DNA from: Trichosphaerium sp. ATCC 40318
Lineage: Eukaryota; Protista; Tubulinea
Assembly (NCBI GenBank): GCA_038496445.1
Contig: JALMLS010000011.1
Location: forward strand, 21,461-85,460
Direction of reading: 5' to 3'
Length of the DNA stretch: 64,000 bases
Shown: positions 1-61,400 of the stretch, one piece after another
How the letters are laid out: each line of letters begins with the position of its first letter
Position numbering within the stretch: position 1 is the first letter of the stretch
Made by a program: the position numbers and the translations under genes
The notes under the pieces: generated by a model
Told to the model about the DNA's origin: nothing
Seen by the model: only the letters and a program-made list of their open reading frames with translations
The model's database searches: none

Positions 1-741
1 CACTCCTAATAGAAGAGCACGTGCCATTGCAACGACCTGAGAGCAGTAGGAGCAATGGGCACTAAGCTGACATGACTTATCATTTTGACCAAATTGCAAA
101 GTTGTTACAAACCATTTCTTATGCGCGTCATTGCCCGGGTCCTTTATCAGTCTAGCTCATTTGGAAGGTGTAAACATTGTGAGATTCTACTATTTCAATG
201 AGTTGGCTTAATAACGGAATGACACACAAGACAAGAATAACATATGCGAAAAACTGGCTTGTTACTTTATCTTGTGGAGAAACTAGTGATTTTATTGGTT
301 TCTTGAGTACTCCCAGCGTACATAGCAATAGCGTGCTGGTTTTAAACTATACTTTAGGCTTTTTATTGCTGTCACAACATGTTGAGTTTGCCATTCTCTT
401 TTCGTTTGTAGCTGAAAATAGAAAGTGAGCACGAGTAGTTTGTAAATAGTTTTAGTCCAAAAAATCTTTCGTACGCTTGACGTGGAGGAGTAGCTCTTTT
501 TTGCCAAATGAACACAGATCAGTATCAAGATTAAGTAACCTTGATTCAAAGTAAAAGCTTACGTTCACACCTCTAAGTGAACTTGGCAAGAATTGTGTCA
601 AGTTTGCAATGGTATTCCCAGATACAAAGTTATGTAGACGTATAGTGTAATAGTTTTGAGCAAATCCACTAAATCCTAACATCACACTACAAGTCTGTGG
701 TGTACCCCGTTCTATACACGGTTACTATGAGCCAAAACAAA

Positions 742-10531: not shown

Positions 10532-11850
10532 TTATTTAATCTTTCTTCCTCTACACCAATCCAAAATGAACGTAAAATTATCTCATATGCATAGCCGAGT
10601 TGTCTCCGTCCTACACCGGCTTCACTAAAATGAGAAAGTAAGAAAGAAAACTACAGCAACAAGCAATACTCACCCACTGTTGAAAGCAAAGAGTACAATA
10701 CATTCATGTGTCACAGCTACCTCTATAGCTTTCACACATATTTCTGATTCCTAATAGCCACTGTGAGTGCCATGTATAATTAGAAGGGCCGTACTGTTGG
10801 TTGTAGATTGTCCAAATCGTTTGCAGTTGATATGAAAATTACAATCGGTACTTCACTATTATGCCGTCTTATTCTCGTAACCAAATCATTTGTTTTCATG
10901 TGACTTGTCACGTGTATAATCACACCAGTCATCTGCAAAAATTTGAAATTGTTATATACAGTTTAAAGTAAGAAAAGGGACGTCGTACATCCTTGACACG
11001 TTGAGCAAAATTAGAGTCATATTTAAATTCCTCGATATCAAAACGGACGTCATAAAGAAAGACATGTTGTTCAAAATAACAAGCTGTGATATCTTGTAAT
11101 ACTTTGGAAGAATGAAACTGTGCTATCTCTACCTATTTTATCGCTGAGTCAAGTACAAAGCAATGAAGAAGAATTTTTTTTTCCCGAAACATGTGGAATT
11201 CTACCCAAATGTCAATGTACCTTGTGACGCTGTACGCGAAACGTTGCGTCATAATTCATTGGCACAGCCCAAGTCTTGTAATTTTCGAACAGCCGACGTG
11301 CAGCCGGTGTCCAGATGATTCGTGTTTCACATCTTCGCGACTGATCAATATCATGTTGTTTTATTATAGTTTCTGGAGCGCGAAGTAGTGTAATGGCGCC
11401 TAATCTTCAATTAGTTGGAGATACAGTTTGCCTCCTGGGTTTACCTTTTGTTATACCCGCTATAGCAAGGAACAACGTATGGGGTGCTTTGGAAATGTTT
11501 TTGACAGCTGTGAGTAGCTTATACCGTAAATCACTGGGAAACAATACTTGTAACTGGAATTGGTTATTTTCGAGCTAATTGGCGCGTTTTTGATGCAAAG
11601 AACGCTTATTTGGTGTGACACGGACCAATCTTGGCAGTCTTTCTTCTGATACGCTTCTCAAGCACTTGTTAGTTAATCTTGTGCCCAATATATCAGTTAA
11701 AGAGACAATATGTTCTAAAATTTCACCAACAATTTCGATTGGTAGTTGATTAAACGTGGCGCCTTTAGCACACTTTGGAGAGCGTTCGCCATTGCCCCAA
11801 TTACTTCGCGACCGTTTACCAGAAAATCGCTGTGATATTCGCCTAGACAT
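10532..11850 (-). CDS. F-box protein with uncharacterised C-terminal region (multi-exon; 3' end approximate)
   Basis: FNQLPIEIVGEILEHIVSLTDILGTRLTNKCLR is an F-box signature; downstream exons are bounded by GT-AG. Confidence 0.6.
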
Positions 11851-12416
11851 TGTGTAGCCTTTGTGTAGCTATGTTGTCGTGTACAAAACGAAAGCAGGAA
11901 TTGCTAAGGCACGACAATACCTAAAGCGACTTGTATTGTTCCTTGCGCCACGAGCAGGCGAAGCATTCTTTTCTACTTGAGTTTTTCAACTAGCGCTAAG
12001 TATGGAACGCATCACAGGAGGGAAGTTGCTTATACTACGCGAATTGATCACAGCCGGCCTTTGTACTTAGCCTAAGGCAAAATACGGCCTGTGTACAAAT
12101 ACGGTTAAACTTCTAAAACGGCTCATTTTCGTTTTTTCTTTTTCACGCCTTGGTTCATCTCCGCTGTCACAACGGCTCCTATCACAATACGCAAAACTTG
12201 CGTGTATGCGTCAACAAAGGTCAGAAATAGCGTACATGCCTTAGAAGGACAACAACACGGCCGATTTGTTGTACAGAAAAACAAACAACTAATTCTAGTA
12301 CGTAATCTGTCACAAGTACGCCTAGATTTTCGTTAACAAACTACAAAGTTTGCGTCCTCAACTCGCTTTTGAATAAAATAGCGTATTTGTAAGATAACGT
12401 TAAACTGCAATACATA

Positions 12417-54099: not shown

Positions 54100-54900
54100 G
54101 AAAATTGACAGCTTCAGTACGCACCTCAACTGTCACTACATATCCAATCAACGTCACTATTTAATCCTCTTACATGTAACTTTGTATTAGGCAGAAGCGG
54201 ACCATCACCTTCTCCAGCACCTTCAAACAATATTTTTACTCTTCAAAAAGGAAACTCACTTTTCTATGCTCTTGATGCTCAACACGTTCTTTAGCTAAAG
54301 GAGAAGGCACAAAAGATAAAAAGCATCTTACCAGGGAAGTTTATTGTGGAACTACCATAGTCCATTGTCAATCGCAATGGGTAGTAAAAAGGAGCATTAC
54401 CCTGCAAAGACAAGTTAGTTGTTGTGATAGTAATTTAAATTGTATTTCAGTGTACCCTGTTAAACATCTTTACAGTAACTCTTAGCTGACCACCGCTTAC
54501 GGAAGTTGTAACTGATTGAATGTAGAACTTATATCCCACTGATAGCGCAGCCTATAACCAACACATTTAGTAAGTAAGAGGTCTAATCAGCTCTAGTATA
54601 GTATTTGAATTATTATGTATCCAAGGAATACTCAAAGAGCCTCCATTAATGAGTACAACGCAAGTGTTTGTAGCAGTCTCTATGCTCTCTACCAAGTCTT
54701 GTTGCGATCCAGGTAATCCTAACACCTTTCTATCACGTTCTAGATATATATTTAGATTAAAATAATGCCGTGCCTGCAGAAGGGTACCTGGAACTGCAAG
54801 CAACATTGTTCTTACAATAGCTGAAAAAGTGTTTATTGTAAGTAGTACGACAACCAAGAAGGATGAGTTGCATCAACAATTATTGAAACCTTGAGGATCG
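54100..54900 (-). pseudogene. Decayed GH3 C-terminal-domain fragment
   Basis: RDRKVLGLPGSQQDLVESI...VVLINGGSLSIPW parallels [16 protein letters not shown]...VALIN|GGSI of the intact GH3 at 6.8-10.3 kb. Flanks contain stops and no catalytic barrel was seen. Confidence 0.6.
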
Positions 54901-55200: not shown

Positions 55201-55701
55201 CTAACCATAGCCTAGCATCACTGTAATCTGGTGGGCATCAGTCAATGCCTTGATGTGCTCTTTTGTCATACCAGAAAATGAGATAGTATGTACACCTGCA
55301 ATTACCTTTAAACCTTCATCTGTAACATTTGTCATTGACAAATCGATTTTATGTACACCTGCTAAAGCTTTGATGCCTTCATCTGTTATTGATTGGCAGT
55401 CCAATAGGTTAATAGTGTGTATGCCCGAAAGTAGCTGCAGATGCTTGTTCTTTGTATCATAGTTACAAAGAAAGATAGCTGTGTTCTTCAGTAAAGGACT
55501 TCCAGAAAGAATTTTCACTTCGGTTTCGCTCTTGACACTGATTTCGCCATAGCCAATGAACTTGTGAATGATATCTCGTAATAAGCAGCACGTTTGCGCT
55601 GCAAGGAGTGTAAATGTTCCTTGATTGAGGATATGAACTATTACTTCTACTGGAAGCGCTACAAGCTCGATTGGGGTATATTCCGTGTATTCCCTGTTCA
55701 T
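55201..55701 (-). CDS. F-box + leucine-rich-repeat protein, intronless (possibly truncated)
   Basis: LVALPVEVIVHIL...AAQTCCLLR, then LRRs LSGIHTINLLDCQSITDEGIKAL / AGVHKIDLSMTNVTDEGLKVI. Confidence 0.78.
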   Translation of the reverse strand: MNREYTEYTPIELVALPVEVIVHILNQGTFTLLAAQTCCLLRDIIHKFIGYGEISVKSETEVKILSGSPLLKNTAIFLCNYDTKNKHLQLLSGIHTINLLDCQSITDEGIKALAGVHKIDLSMTNVTDEGLKVIAGVHTISFSGMTKEHIKALTDAHQITVMLGYG

Positions 55702-56362
55702 TTTGTTAAAACAGGTTAGCCGTTTATCGTTGGTACGCTTTTGATTATTGTATGCCTGTTGAGATACAATAAAGCTATTTGTTGCAGTTGAAATGTGTAT
55801 GCTTGACTTCCCTAGAATTAGCAACCATTTATGTTGCATGTTCACTACTTTTTTATCAAAGCTTGAGATAATGACTAGACGGACAGTCTCCAGAGACAGA
55901 CTTAGTCTTCAACGGTACCTAATATATGGTCTTGCTGTTAGAACGTTTAGTGGTCGTAATAGAATTGCGGTTGAAGCACATAGCGCAGGAATAAAGTTTT
56001 TAAGAGCCAAGCCATTAGAAAGCAATCACTGCATGTTTCAGTTTCCCATGTTTTTCTTACTTACCTTGTTGTTTTTGCTGATACACATCCACTTGTACAG
56101 CGAAGTGGTCTTGAACGTCTTCTTCCTTGCACTTGCAAAGATCTAACTGTACATATTCTTCACTAAAATGCAAAACAAAAAAAATATCACGTGATCTGAA
56201 ACAGATTAGCCTACCAAAATCATACCATTCATTACTAGTACTTATCCACATCTATCGCCTAGAACTCTAAACTTCGTCGACTGTTCTTTCGAAAGCAAAT
56301 AATAAAACGGTAAGCTCATGTTTAAAACGACTATCTAATGCGATTTAGGATATAGATAAACA

Positions 56363-58072
56363 ATGTCTGAAGTGAAAAGCTTGCGTATTTATGACGAACC
56401 ACCCATAAATCATATTCAACAGCTTCCAGATGACATGCTAGCGTTACTACTGTTCGTTTTTAGCGACCCAGTGCGTGTTCCTATCATAATGAAGCGAACT
56501 TGCCATAGATTCCGCAAATACATCCAACACCTTCCCGACAGCTTCTTTGTCTTACTTTGCAAGCGGTTAAACATATATTTGATGTTCCCATTTTATAAAA
56601 ACCAAACAATACGGGAGTTTTGGTTTGATTACGTTCCAGTACACTTTAAATACACCGCATACCATCCAGAGAACTTCGCAATTGAAAGCACAGCATTTGG
56701 CACACTAGTTTCTAGCATCAGCAGGCTTATGATAAGGGGTTTTGTTTGGTCACCAGAAGCCTTGTTATTACTTCAAACAAGCGCTGAATCATACATAATA
56801 AAGCAATTCACGTGGTTTTCTGAAACGGCAGAATGTATCAAAGATGTAGATGTTGAGAATTTGACCCTACAAAGATCTCAATTAGAACGGCATTCAAGAA
56901 GTACTGCTATTAACTGGGATAGCTGTCAGGAATTCTGCAGTGTTTTTGGCGTTGAGTATAGTAACGAAAATGCAAAGGAAGATGAGGTATATGTATGTAG
57001 TGACCAAGAGGACGAAGAAGATGAGGTTGACCTGTACCAAGATGATTGTTATGTTTTAAAAGATGGATCAAACCAGTTTGCTTATGAAAGGTTCAGTAAT
57101 ATCACAGGATTGATTCAACACGCTCCACGTCATTTAACCAAGAAACTAAAGAAACTAGAAAAGATTCATGGAAATAGTATTTATACAAATGTTGATGTAT
57201 TTGGTATGACACCTTTACATGTTGCAGCTGATAGGGCTGAGGTGAGTGCTAGTGGTGAGGTATATAGTAAAATCTACAGCACTGTGAAAAAACACCAAAT
57301 CGACTTTAACCTTAGAGATAACTTTGGCAAAACAGTATTGATGTACATAGGGGAGGATTTATCAATAGACAACATTGATACATGTGAATCCTTTGATTTT
57401 AACCTTAGAGATAATAGAGGATGGTCTTTTCTGCACTATAGTCCCAGATATGATATATTAGTTAATGGATTGCACTTGTTTGATATTGATATATTTTGGA
57501 TGTGGTTTATTAGAGAGGATTATGAATTGCTACTTGATGAAGCAATTATTCCTTATTGGGAAAACCTCAATATTTTTGAACCTGATGAAGATGGACGGAC
57601 CATTGCTTTTAAGATTGCAGAGGTTGATGACAAACATCAAACATTAGAGTACGGTGAATTTTCTAAAATCATTTGCAAACACAAAAACTTCATACCTAAC
57701 CACCAAGATATTCTTGGTGACACTGCGCTCATTGCTGCTTGCAAAAGTTTTAATCCTCAAATGATTTTCCAGCTTGTTATGTCTGGTGTTGATGCTACAA
57801 TAAAGAATCATGAAGGCAAGACTGCCCTTGATTATATTTTGGATTGGCAGAAGTGTGATCCCTCTGAAGTAGATGAAGCGTTAGCTAATAGTGATGATGC
57901 TATTGATAAGGAAATAATAAATGCTCTCACAACTGGTGTTGTGTCAAAACAAGCTCTTTACTATATGTCCTTACTAGATGAGCAAGGTACCAATGCAGCA
58001 CCTTGGAGCTATGAACTTTCAAGGTATTTGTTGGTAAAGAAGATGGGCTTAAAATCGAGGCATCAACATTGA
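56363..58072 (+). CDS. F-box + histone-H3-like fold + acidic linker + ankyrin repeats, intronless
   Basis: IQQLPDDML...MKRTCHRFR (F-box); aa ~105-180 resemble the H3 core; DQEDEEDEVD acidic tract; ankyrin starts DVFGMTPLHVAA, DNFGKTVLMY, DNRGWSFLHY, DILGDTALIAAC, NHEGKTALDY. Confidence 0.8.
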   Translation: MSEVKSLRIYDEPPINHIQQLPDDMLALLLFVFSDPVRVPIIMKRTCHRFRKYIQHLPDSFFVLLCKRLNIYLMFPFYKNQTIREFWFDYVPVHFKYTAYHPENFAIESTAFGTLVSSISRLMIRGFVWSPEALLLLQTSAESYIIKQFTWFSETAECIKDVDVENLTLQRSQLERHSRSTAINWDSCQEFCSVFGVEYSNENAKEDEVYVCSDQEDEEDEVDLYQDDCYVLKDGSNQFAYERFSNITGLIQHAPRHLTKKLKKLEKIHGNSIYTNVDVFGMTPLHVAADRAEVSASGEVYSKIYSTVKKHQIDFNLRDNFGKTVLMYIGEDLSIDNIDTCESFDFNLRDNRGWSFLHYSPRYDILVNGLHLFDIDIFWMWFIREDYELLLDEAIIPYWENLNIFEPDEDGRTIAFKIAEVDDKHQTLEYGEFSKIICKHKNFIPNHQDILGDTALIAACKSFNPQMIFQLVMSGVDATIKNHEGKTALDYILDWQKCDPSEVDEALANSDDAIDKEIINALTTGVVSKQALYYMSLLDEQGTNAAPWSYELSRYLLVKKMGLKSRHQH

Positions 58073-58422
58073 TTGGATCGCCTCAGGACTACTAGTTGTG
58101 CGTTGTGTTATTTGCACCAGGTATCCTTATATGTTGAAGTCATTGTAATTCTTAAAATTTAATAAAAGTAACATACAGAATAATAGTTGAGTGAAAAAAC
58201 TAAAGCAGTTGTCAGAATAAAATCGACTGAGAATTTTTGCCAAAATAACTAAATACCTACATTCTCTCAAGTTGCTGCATTTATTTAACTACAAACACTG
58301 TAAATAATCTCTAAACAACTAAAACAATAGCAGAAGCGATACAGGTACTTACAAGCTTGTAACAGAGAATACCAATCACGTGCTTTCTAGGTCATGTTCA
58401 AAAAGGATTTTGAGTTATCCCT

Positions 58423-61400
58423 TCAGTTTGTTGAAGCGAATCGAGCCAAGTTTACTACAAAGGAAACATCCATTAATACTCAAGTTCAATGCCATTTTTA
58501 AAAAGAAGTACATACCAGTAGGATGGGTAAATTCTAAAGACTTTGGCACGTGAATCTATAAAAAAAAACAAGAAGTTAGCATACCATTGAAAACAAGCTA
58601 TCTGATAAAGCGTTCCGTTAAAAAGATGTAGTTGTAAAAACAAAGAACAGTATGAAAATGGACAACTCCAAGTGCAAGAGATGTGGGTTGATGGCGAACA
58701 CAAATGCTGGAACTCAAAGCACAGCGTACCTGGTGTTCTGGGTTTGATAAAACTATTGAGTTCATGTGAAGTATACTTTGTTCTACTAAGCTTGCGAATA
58801 ACTCACTAGATATTAGAATTTCTCTGTGTTTGCTTAGTTGTCCTGTAACACAAAAAGATATCGAATCATTCTTTATCATGTATCCAATACCTAAACAAAG
58901 TTAAACGGGTGGGAATAGTTTGTTGTGTTGAGAACAAAAAAAAGTCAGAAAAAAATGCGGAAAAAAAAAAGTCATACCAAACCCTCTAGTAACTACAGGT
59001 CCAAATCCAAAAGCACTTAAAGAAGGTGAACCACAATGACTAGAAGAAAGCTTCCAGTGACTTGATTTTTTGAAGTTAGGATCAGTAAACAGCTGAGGAA
59101 CCTCAATGTCTAAAAAAATCAATCGTGAGCCAAAACAAGAAACAAAACAATCCTGTTTTCTTACCTTCTCCTTTAGCTCGAAGTTCTTCCAGTATTTTAC
59201 CAAGACCAAATAAGTGCCTATCGACTCCCATACCCTTTAAGAAAAATTACATTGTACAAGGCTCCACAGAACAAAGAAAGTATTTTTGGTTTTTGATAAT
59301 TTCAATAAAGTTTCGTGCCTTCTTTGCTTTTCTCATGTACGCCACATGAGACTCAACAGCTTGTTTAAGCAGCGTTAATTGTGATGGTCTATTATCAAAA
59401 CCATAACTTAGAAGTGGTGCAAAAGAGCTTTTTACAAACTCTAAAGAAGCCAAACTACAGCTTCTTACAGTTTCAGTACGTCCATGGAAAAAAGTCCTTG
59501 TTGATGCCGACTCATACGTCCTAAGCACCATTACCTGTGAAAATCATGCTTCACTATGAGTAAAACTAGTACGTACGCGCAACAGTTACCAAACATCTTA
59601 TAGTAAGCCAATTGTATAGCAATTTGGATAAAGGCATCAGGAGACATTTTGTTTTCTTTTATCCATTTTCCACCAAATTTAGTAAACCTTAACATTGACG
59701 TTGCATTATTAAGAACGAGTTCTCTGTATTTAAGATATGCTGCTTTTATCGAGTCTTTGATATCTTCGGATAACTTGAATTGTAATCTCTCTGGGCGGTC
59801 TTGTTTTGCTGGAGGCTTTGTGTTTGGAACTTTTGAACCATATTTGCAACAGTGTTTATACATTGTATCAGCTAATCGAAGAGTTGATGTTCCATCAGCG
59901 GATGCGTGCTCCCATACCACACCAGCTTTGCCATTACGACATACTATGAGTTGATTTTTATCAAACCAACGGTTACTGCCATCACCTAAACGAACAAAAG
60001 TAAATATAAAGATAAATACAAAACAAGAGCATAAAACACGAAAACAGATCACTGTGCACGTGACAGTAAAAGGTGTTGATGTGCAATTAGTAGAATGATT
60101 TTTTAATAATAAATATTAGTTTTTGGTCAGTACCGTGAAGTGCAACACGACAGAGTTCCTCGACGTTTTGAGGTGTTTTATCATCAAGACAAAGTATGAT
60201 AAGAGCTGATTGTATAACCTTTAATATATCGGCATTCTTCTTACTATGCTCAATCAAATCTTCTCTTACAGTAGCCCATTGATCTCTTTCTTCAGATGTG
60301 AGTGTACCAATAGGAAGCTGAGTTTTTTGAGAACGAGCATCGGTTAAAATATACGACAAGCATCTATTTACAGAAGAAATATTATGAGCTTTGGTTTTGA
60401 GTTCTGTTAAATGTCTTACTGTTCTATGTACGATATAGAGCGTACAGATCCTTTATCTAATACACGCATACTGTAAAAGTTATCCTTATGTAACACGACC
60501 ACGTGTTTAGAGTCACAGTATTCATACTGCGTTGTTTTTGATCCGAAATCACGACCAATTGGTTCTTTCTGATACGTGATGAGGTGATCACGTTTCTTTC
60601 CAGGTACTCGAGAACATGCGAATAATCTTGGGTATTGACTCATACATAGAGGTGTACCACGTTCAGAATCAGGTGATAATGTTTTCGCTTCGATTTCTTG
60701 ACGGAATGTCAATGCGCCATGAAGAAGTCCTGCAGCTCGTGATACTTGATTTTGTTCCTCTACGATAGACGTTAACTTTAGTACTATAAATTGAGTAGTC
60801 TACGGTACCTGGACGAGGTTGATCTTCAAAAGTATAAAAGTAATTGACGTGTACACTAAAGCATCAAATAAGTTTAAGAGAAAAAAACAAACACTAAAGA
60901 ATCATGCTTTTCAAGGTTAGGTGAAGAGTGTAGAAGCTCAAAAGTTTATTCCCAGCAGAAGATACTGTGGTTACTCGATTGCAGGTCACAACACGTTGAT
61001 TCCAGGCAACTAAAGATAGAAAAAAAATAAAACTTAAAAAAACTTTCAAGAAAATAACAAATGAGTGAGTCTTTCTTCAGACTGAACCAAAGCGTTCAAC
61101 GCACCTAATGGGAGCTCTACCTTCACAATAACTATCATCCCACCAATCTTCAAGCCAGCTAGGACACCGAGTTTGGCTTTTTGCAACCAATTTTTTTTGA
61201 AGCTAAAAAGGGCGTTACAAGTTTATCCGGTATGCCTGTCGCTTATGGTACCATTTCTCCTACGCCTCCAGGCGCTATAAACTCATCTACAGCGGCTTTT
61301 GTCGTTATAAAGTCTTCTATCGTTGATAACGGTTTAACAGACTCCAAATACCTTTAATAATGTTACCGGAGCGCTTAGGAAGCGAAAAAAGCGATGATTG

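Follow-up and report, generated by a model that had tools for sequence, protein, structure and literature searches.

The longest open reading frame (ORF) in a 64-kb stretch of the genome of the amoeba Trichosphaerium sp. ATCC 40318 (contig JALMLS010000011.1; this stretch is referred to as the window, and nucleotide coordinates are positions in it) occupies positions 56363-58072 of the plus strand, is free of introns, and encodes a protein of 569 amino acids (aa), to whose numbering all residue positions refer. We found that aa 107-150 of this protein are similar, well above chance, to the histone fold of H3 and of its centromeric variant CenH3, and that the similarity extends over the first half of the fold only. 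On balance, we favour the explanation that the ORF is a functional, lineage-restricted amoeba gene, and that its product is a four-part probable adaptor of an SCF-type ubiquitin ligase, in which a diverged H3/CenH3 remnant is combined with an F-box-like motif, an acidic tract and ankyrin repeats. As judged from the alignments, the remnant corresponds to alpha1-L1-alpha2 stripped of the basic residues that contact DNA, with the buried or partner-facing hydrophobic residues kept, and possibly a degenerate alpha3 follows it. This explanation is supported by the ORF being intact in an intron-rich context, and by short sequences from a second sample, which are 95-99% identical to parts of the locus and contain no indels.

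Similarity of aa 107-150 to histone H3

Natural H3-type cores were taken from giant-virus and environmental contigs, and profiles of the 70-residue core were built from them. The query for this collection was the H3 fragment quoted in an earlier, sequence-only reading of the locus, with its 11-residue gap filled in. A second viral scan, made with an H3 alignment, added only a few new cores, and a further word search, in which divergent H3 variants served as queries so as to broaden the profile, yielded canonical H3 almost exclusively and was not used. On going from the profile of 47 distinct cores to one of 53, which included more divergent sequences, the score of aa 95-190 rose from 16.9 bits (P 3.6e-7) to 20.5 bits (P 2e-8), and that of the whole protein from 13.0 bits (P 1e-5) to 16.9 bits (P 3e-7). 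None of 20000 shuffles of the fragment, and none of 5000 full-length shuffles, reached the score obtained with the 47-core profile. In addition, shuffles that kept the class (hydrophobic, small or polar) of every position never attained 20.5 bits (0 of 20000; maximum 15.6), indicating that the match to H3 is more than an amphipathic-helix pattern. Among the 723 six-frame ORFs of the window, only 56363-58072 matched the H3 profile, the next best reaching 4.4 bits. Genuine H4, whose kinship to H3 through the histone fold is real, scored only 9.9 bits against the same profile, below the score of the query.

Likeness of the query to H4 was considered and rejected, the score against an H4 profile being 0.3 bits. 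A separate candidate for H4 similarity, NITGLIQHAPRHLTKK (aa 246-261; 57098-57145, plus strand), is identical at 6 of 16 residues to NIQGITKPAIRRLARR, with which the H4 fold begins, and was not significant (-1.7 bits, P 0.22).

The sequence-only reading had aligned aa ~105-180 by eye to the H3 core, and the first part of that alignment, aa 105-150 to H3 60-105, stands. Specifically, hmmsearch, hhalign, Smith-Waterman and MAFFT independently aligned these residues to H3 60-105 without gaps, with 11 identities in 46 positions to the quoted H3 fragment, and all aligners ended at H3 core positions 45-46, which correspond to aa 149-150. The probability given by hhalign for the match to the H3 profile was 68% (P 4.9e-5); the best pairwise Smith-Waterman score was 70, compared with a shuffle mean of 29 and a standard deviation of 4.7 (Gumbel P about 1e-5); and MAFFT on its own placed H3 pieces at the same position, with 20-36% identity.

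The residues kept in aa 107-150 are F67, L70, V71, I74, A88, L92, Q93, E97, Y99 and F104 (H3 numbering); in the numbering of the query, the positions that match H3 are F112, L115, V116, I119, W129, A133, L137, Q138, E142, Y144 and F149. The alignment indicates that the hydrophobic ones are those which are buried or face H4 in H3, as known from the established nucleosome structure. The basic residues of H3 60-105, six in number, have all been replaced (R63E, K64S, R69T, R72S, K79I and R83V), in agreement with the earlier remark that the residues contacting DNA were largely lost. The CENP-A flavour that had been attributed to the segment is also borne out, in that the six best-scoring natural cores all carry, as the query does, a W at the position equivalent to F84 of H3, and in that CENP-A chains share 31-35% identity with the segment, compared with 25% for canonical H3. 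The closest natural sequence, with 36% identity, is a very divergent H3-like core in the giant-virus metagenome-assembled genome IMGVR_UViG_GVMAG-M-3300014838-21_000001, located at the start of a contig and cut by the contig end.

When aa 95-190 were searched by embedding against 7.7 million Atlas clusters, every listed row was a histone cluster (PF00125), with scores of 0.90-0.85, to be read against the fact that 4-10% of shuffled proteins attain 0.9 and that the method is calibrated on whole proteins. These rows had 163-188 of 256 features in common with the query, and the ten best family-bearing matches belonged to one family or clan, thereby removing the worry that another family might fit better. 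By the calibration of the method itself, this result is moderate evidence.

The second half of the fold and the competing explanations

The remaining part of the alignment proposed by eye, which paired NLTLQRSQLERHSR with RVTIMPKDIQLARR (L2-alpha3), did not hold. It is unsupported because a profile of the C-terminal half (end of alpha2, L2 and alpha3) scored -1.7 bits on aa 149-200, a value equalled or exceeded by 28% of shuffles; the conserved L2-alpha3 sequence (RVTIxPKDIQLARR) is not recognisable in the query. With the register fixed by the first half and gaps disallowed, the second half scored -6.5 bits, where shuffles averaged -15.2 +/- 5.7 (P 0.05-0.07). Over the whole protein, the C-terminal half fitted best at +3 residues relative to the expected register (1 of 544), a proximity that may be called suggestive and no more.

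Two structure models were examined. Single-sequence AlphaFold prediction of aa 1-260 gave a predicted local distance difference test (pLDDT) value of 34 and was unusable. The second model, of aa 95-200, was made with an alignment in which H3 sequences covered core positions 1-46 only; it had a pLDDT of 78, and its helices outside the alignment cover had values of 79-88. With this model, Foldseek placed H3 and CENP-A first, but these alignments spanned no more than 44 columns (0.6-0.8 A, E 0.07), and its longer alignments had root-mean-square deviations near 10 A. A fold search independent of Foldseek had H3, trypanosome H3.V and CENP-A on top (57-66 residues aligned), with Z scores of 6.5-6.6, in a range (below 8) that is common for helical models; these were followed by other histone folds, namely H2B, TAF4/12, CENP-S/X, NC2, NF-YB/YC and ORP1/2, the histone folds at the top together spanning Z 6.6-5. 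The alignments of this search always covered model residues 1-67, so that superposition ran from alpha1 to the end of alpha2, and the third helix was never superposed on the alpha3 of a histone. The model is not independent evidence, because its first half was driven by the H3 alignment. As alpha3 lacks support, the results do not establish the full histone fold. That aa ~105-180 might nevertheless adopt this fold in its entirety and be capable of pairing appears possible but doubtful.

Several results weigh against the gene being an SCF adaptor with an H3/CenH3 remnant. To the silent second half, the unusable first model, the unmatched third helix, the modest Z scores, the dependence of the second model on its input and the calibration of the embedding search, we add those of the family and structure databases. 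No Pfam family matched aa 1-260, 1-100 or 101-196 at E<=10, and thus neither F-box nor Histone; specifically, the Histone model (PF00125) had no match in aa 101-196 or 1-260, and the F-box models (PF00646, PF12937 and relatives) had none in aa 1-100 or 1-260. In a PDB sequence search with aa 1-260, no histone was among the matches listed at E<=10, and the best matches were retroviral integrases, at E 0.23-0.93. Lastly, no RNA run was found among the public sequencing runs. The integrase match itself (aa 44-135, E 0.23) is surely spurious and was treated as noise, and it serves as a yardstick for what chance may produce at that scale.

Chance resemblance is a competing explanation. According to it, which we consider unlikely, the protein is a lineage-specific F-box/ankyrin protein, or a plain ankyrin protein, in which a helical linker mimics the alpha1-L1-alpha2 pattern of H3 without any link to histones. 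It is favoured by the silence of Pfam Histone, an aligned stretch of only 43-44 residues and a C-terminal half at chance level; a P of about 3e-7 per protein amounts to an E of ~0.01 per proteome, and a few such matches are possible across millions of ORFs; and the spurious integrase match is of similar strength. However, no shuffle reached the observed score, including the 20000 that preserved the hydrophobic pattern; the score climbed as the H3 profile was broadened; the query scored higher than genuine H4 against the H3 profile; the embedding search, which is free of any hypothesis, picked histones from all its clusters; and the best offset of the C-terminal half fell 3 residues from the expected register. 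We regard a histone fold of the H3/CenH3 type as the quite likely ancestor of aa 107-150.

Searches for relatives bear on a further explanation. A word-index search with the whole protein found no match, and no relative was found in scans of IMG/VR viral contigs and JGI metagenomes; the window contains no paralogue of the ORF. An exhaustive phmmer search with aa 1-200 against 1.84 billion representative proteins had no match, the query protein itself included, which places the host genome outside that library. Such a lack of relatives elsewhere is often seen in defence families, and would fit an integrated decoy, whereby the H3-like piece, instead of serving as an interaction module in the histone metabolism of the cell itself, displays the surface of a host protein, and a pathogen or viral factor targeting H3 or CenH3 is captured and ubiquitinated or sensed. 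We judge such a decoy very unlikely.

Other parts of the protein and the genomic setting

The N-terminal F-box of the sequence-only reading is discernible only at the level of a motif and through a weak lead from the embedding search, because the Pfam F-box models give no match. In the textbook F-box pattern, LPxE is followed by a hydrophobic ladder and by C-basic-R-W/F. Residues 21-50, LPDDMLALLLFVFSDPVRVPIIMKRTCHRF, contain the motif LPDDML...CHRF and fit this core pattern (LPxE, hydrophobic ladder, [VT]C[KRH]R[WF]), the bipartite form of which appeared in 0 of 200000 shuffles, although the pattern was written after the sequence had been seen. For aa 5-94, the nearest Atlas cluster was an F-box cluster (0.88), but with just 115 features in common it counts as no more than a lead; for aa 1-200 the nearest was likewise F-box, at 0.77, a weak lead. 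We think it reasonably probable that the N-terminus is a working F-box. Elsewhere in the window, an ORF piece at 11578-11868 (minus strand) contains an F-box-like motif (FNQLPIEIVGEILEHIVSL...KCLRSV) with no Pfam match, and possibly represents an exon of another F-box gene.

Ankyrin repeats are present at aa ~262-362 and ~393-500. With the whole protein, Pfam matched ankyrin models only: Ank_2 at 36.2 bits (cut-off 27.3; 9.2e-09), Ank_4 at 25.5 bits (cut-off 22.7) and Ank at 21.1 bits (cut-off 21.1); by these matches, the protein is a member of the ankyrin-repeat proteins. Likewise, the PDB sequence search with the whole protein returned ankyrin proteins only, covering aa ~232-362 and ~393-521; many solved ankyrin proteins were among them (Bd3460, DARPins, AnkX and others), with E values down to 2e-9. 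No Pfam or PDB match was found beyond aa ~521. Within aa 186-260 there are 19 D+E. The single intronless ORF, the ankyrin repeats and the acidic tract described in the sequence-only reading were thus all confirmed.

Internal duplications were observed in both regions. In the acidic tract, a 30-nt unit is present at 56959-56988 and again at 56998-57027, and a 20-nt unit, GAYTTTAACCTTAGAGATAA, which encodes DFNLRDN, is common to two ankyrin repeats at 95% identity (57302-57414, plus strand). These duplicated sequences suggest recent repeat duplication or conversion.

Table 1. Features of the ORF, of the model of aa 95-200 and of the flanking DNA
Feature	Position in window (nt)	Residues (aa)	Strand	Evidence or remark
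Whole gene body, intronless ORF, 569 codons + stop	56363..58072		+	ORF listing
F-box-like motif (LPDDMLALLLFVF...TCHRF)	56423..56512	21-50	+	Bipartite pattern, embedding lead
H3/CenH3-like segment, matching H3 alpha1, L1 and first two-thirds of alpha2	56681..56812	107-150	+	Profile, pairwise, shuffle, embedding
Predicted alpha2 continuation (to aa 160), short loop, third helix (aa 164-180)	56813..56902	151-180	+	Without significant H3 similarity
Helix 1		109-123		Second model (aa 95-200)
Helix 2		131-160		Second model; 30 residues, the length of H3 alpha2; 10 residues past alignment cover, pLDDT 79-88
Helix 3		164-180		Second model (aa 95-200)
Helix 4		185-194		Second model (aa 95-200)
Acidic tract with internal 30-nt duplication	56969..57055	~203-231	+	Composition, repeat search
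Ankyrin-repeat region, about six repeats in two blocks	57146..57862	~262-500	+	Pfam, PDB
C-terminal tail without assignable domain	57863..58069	501-569	+	Pfam, PDB
AATAAA, 89 nt 3' of the stop codon, possible polyadenylation signal	58161..58166		+	Motif scan
Glycosyl hydrolase family 3 fragment, upstream neighbour	54567-54857		-	Family match
Multi-exon carnitine/choline acyltransferase gene	59531-60712		-	Consecutive ORF pieces

An in-frame TAA lies directly 5' of the start ATG of the ORF, and only eight ORFs of at least 180 aa are present in the window. The neighbouring genes are split by introns in the typical eukaryotic manner; for example, three successive ORF pieces on the minus strand to the 3' side match consecutive parts of carnitine acyltransferase. 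The flanking genes show that the locus lies in an intron-rich host context. The G+C content is 36-42% throughout the window and is the same in the ORF as in its surroundings, and the signs of a retrocopy or transposon origin that were sought around the ORF, flanking direct repeats and a poly(A) remnant, were not found. Since the neighbours are intron-split, the G+C content is matched and such repeats and remnants are lacking, the ORF is an intact intronless gene of an intron-rich nuclear genome. Foreign or decaying DNA, i.e. a recent giant-virus, bacterial or retrocopy insertion that does not work as a host gene, would explain an intronless ORF in an intron-rich genome, and F-box and ankyrin families are abundant in viruses and bacteria associated with amoebae (PMC5753266, PMC7830128), but it is highly improbable given the uniform G+C content, the absence of repeats and of a poly(A) remnant, the lack of relatives in IMG/VR or JGI metagenomes, and 569 intact codons.

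The pieces from a second sample are three short contigs of one low-coverage public sequencing run, which match parts of the locus (57263-57383, 57723-57878 and 58264-58400). The 3' flank, with 6 differences in 137, diverges more than the ORF, with 5 in 277. On sequence grounds, these contigs probably represent a related strain or a second allele.

Another intronless ORF, of 214 aa (55201-55845, minus strand), is located 517 bp upstream, head to head with 56363-58072. Pfam assigns LRR_6 repeats (1.9e-05) to this ORF and, weakly, an F-box-like domain (PF12937, E 0.089). Because of this arrangement, the two putative F-box genes may have a common promoter region. The sequence CACGTG occurs 44 times in the 64 kb, compared with an estimated ~8 copies expected from base composition, and two of the copies, at 56187 and 58376, lie beside ORF 56363-58072.

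Related systems and a possible role

Full-text literature searches revealed no F-box protein carrying a histone fold, and the earlier remark that no described protein of this architecture was known agrees with the papers searched. Compared with H3 and CenH3 (histone fold, PF00125), the query resembles them in the ungapped alignment of aa 107-150 to H3 62-105, in the W at the F84 position, as in CenH3-like variants, and in a predicted alpha2 of ~30 residues. It differs from them in that no H3 N-terminal tail precedes the segment, the basic DNA-contact residues of the aligned stretch are replaced, L2-alpha3 is unrecognisable, Pfam is silent, and the segment is contained within a 569-aa protein that is not a histone. 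Helix-loop-helix structures of the histone-fold type also serve as dimerisation modules outside nucleosomes, in TAFs, NF-Y, CENP-T/W/S/X and Plasmodium ORP1/2, and some of these (TAF4/12, CENP-S/X, NF-YB/YC and ORP1/2), together with NC2, are among the structural matches of the aa 95-200 model. In these proteins, unlike the query, all three helices are present and the partner is known, and the papers searched report none that is fused to an F-box or ankyrin repeats.

Proteins combining an F-box with ankyrin repeats include Legionella AnkB (PMC2790608) and the Ank effectors of Orientia (PMC11401901). They and the query have in common an F-box-type motif for docking on Skp1 and ankyrin repeats as the substrate-binding part, whereas in the query the F-box is recognised at the motif level only, and a stretch of ~200 residues that contains the H3-like segment and acidic tract separates the motif from the repeats. 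PDB, word-index and phmmer searches found no sequence relationship between the query and these effectors.

Ubiquitin ligases are also tied to the part of CenH3 that is best conserved in the query. SCF-Ppa, acting on Drosophila CID, and Psh1, acting on yeast Cse4, recognise L1 and alpha2 of CenH3. There, however, CenH3 is the substrate of the ligase, whereas the adaptor encoded here would itself carry a CenH3-like surface. E3 ligases that recognise CenH3 have been reviewed (PMC13079627, PMC6847487).

As the most likely mode of action, we propose that the 569-aa protein would be a substrate receptor in an SCF-type ubiquitin ligase, where it would be anchored to Skp1 through its F-box-like motif. 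The main substrate-binding domain would consist of the ankyrin repeats, and the DNA-blind H3-like module, together with the adjacent acidic tract, would provide a second interaction surface. This module would most plausibly engage H4, a histone chaperone or another protein that recognises the L1-alpha2 face of H3/CenH3. The role suggested in the sequence-only reading, that of a bait by which an SCF ligase would capture H4, chaperones or viral histones, is likewise hypothetical. A broader proposal, which we hold to be decidedly unlikely, is that SCF adaptors with an internal, DNA-blind copy of CenH3/H3 L1-alpha2 beside an acidic tract constitute an expanded family in this amoeba, and that this copy serves to pair with H4, or else to trap readers of that surface, be they chaperones or histone-binding proteins of viruses or pathogens, for ubiquitination.

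If the resemblance to H3 is only a relic or due to chance, the gene encodes one more orphan F-box/ankyrin protein. If the H3-like segment works as a module, the protein would be the first known ubiquitin-ligase adaptor to contain part of a histone fold, and it would point to an unexplored control, in amoebae, of histone supply, of centromeric histone deposition, or of defence against parasites that target chromatin.

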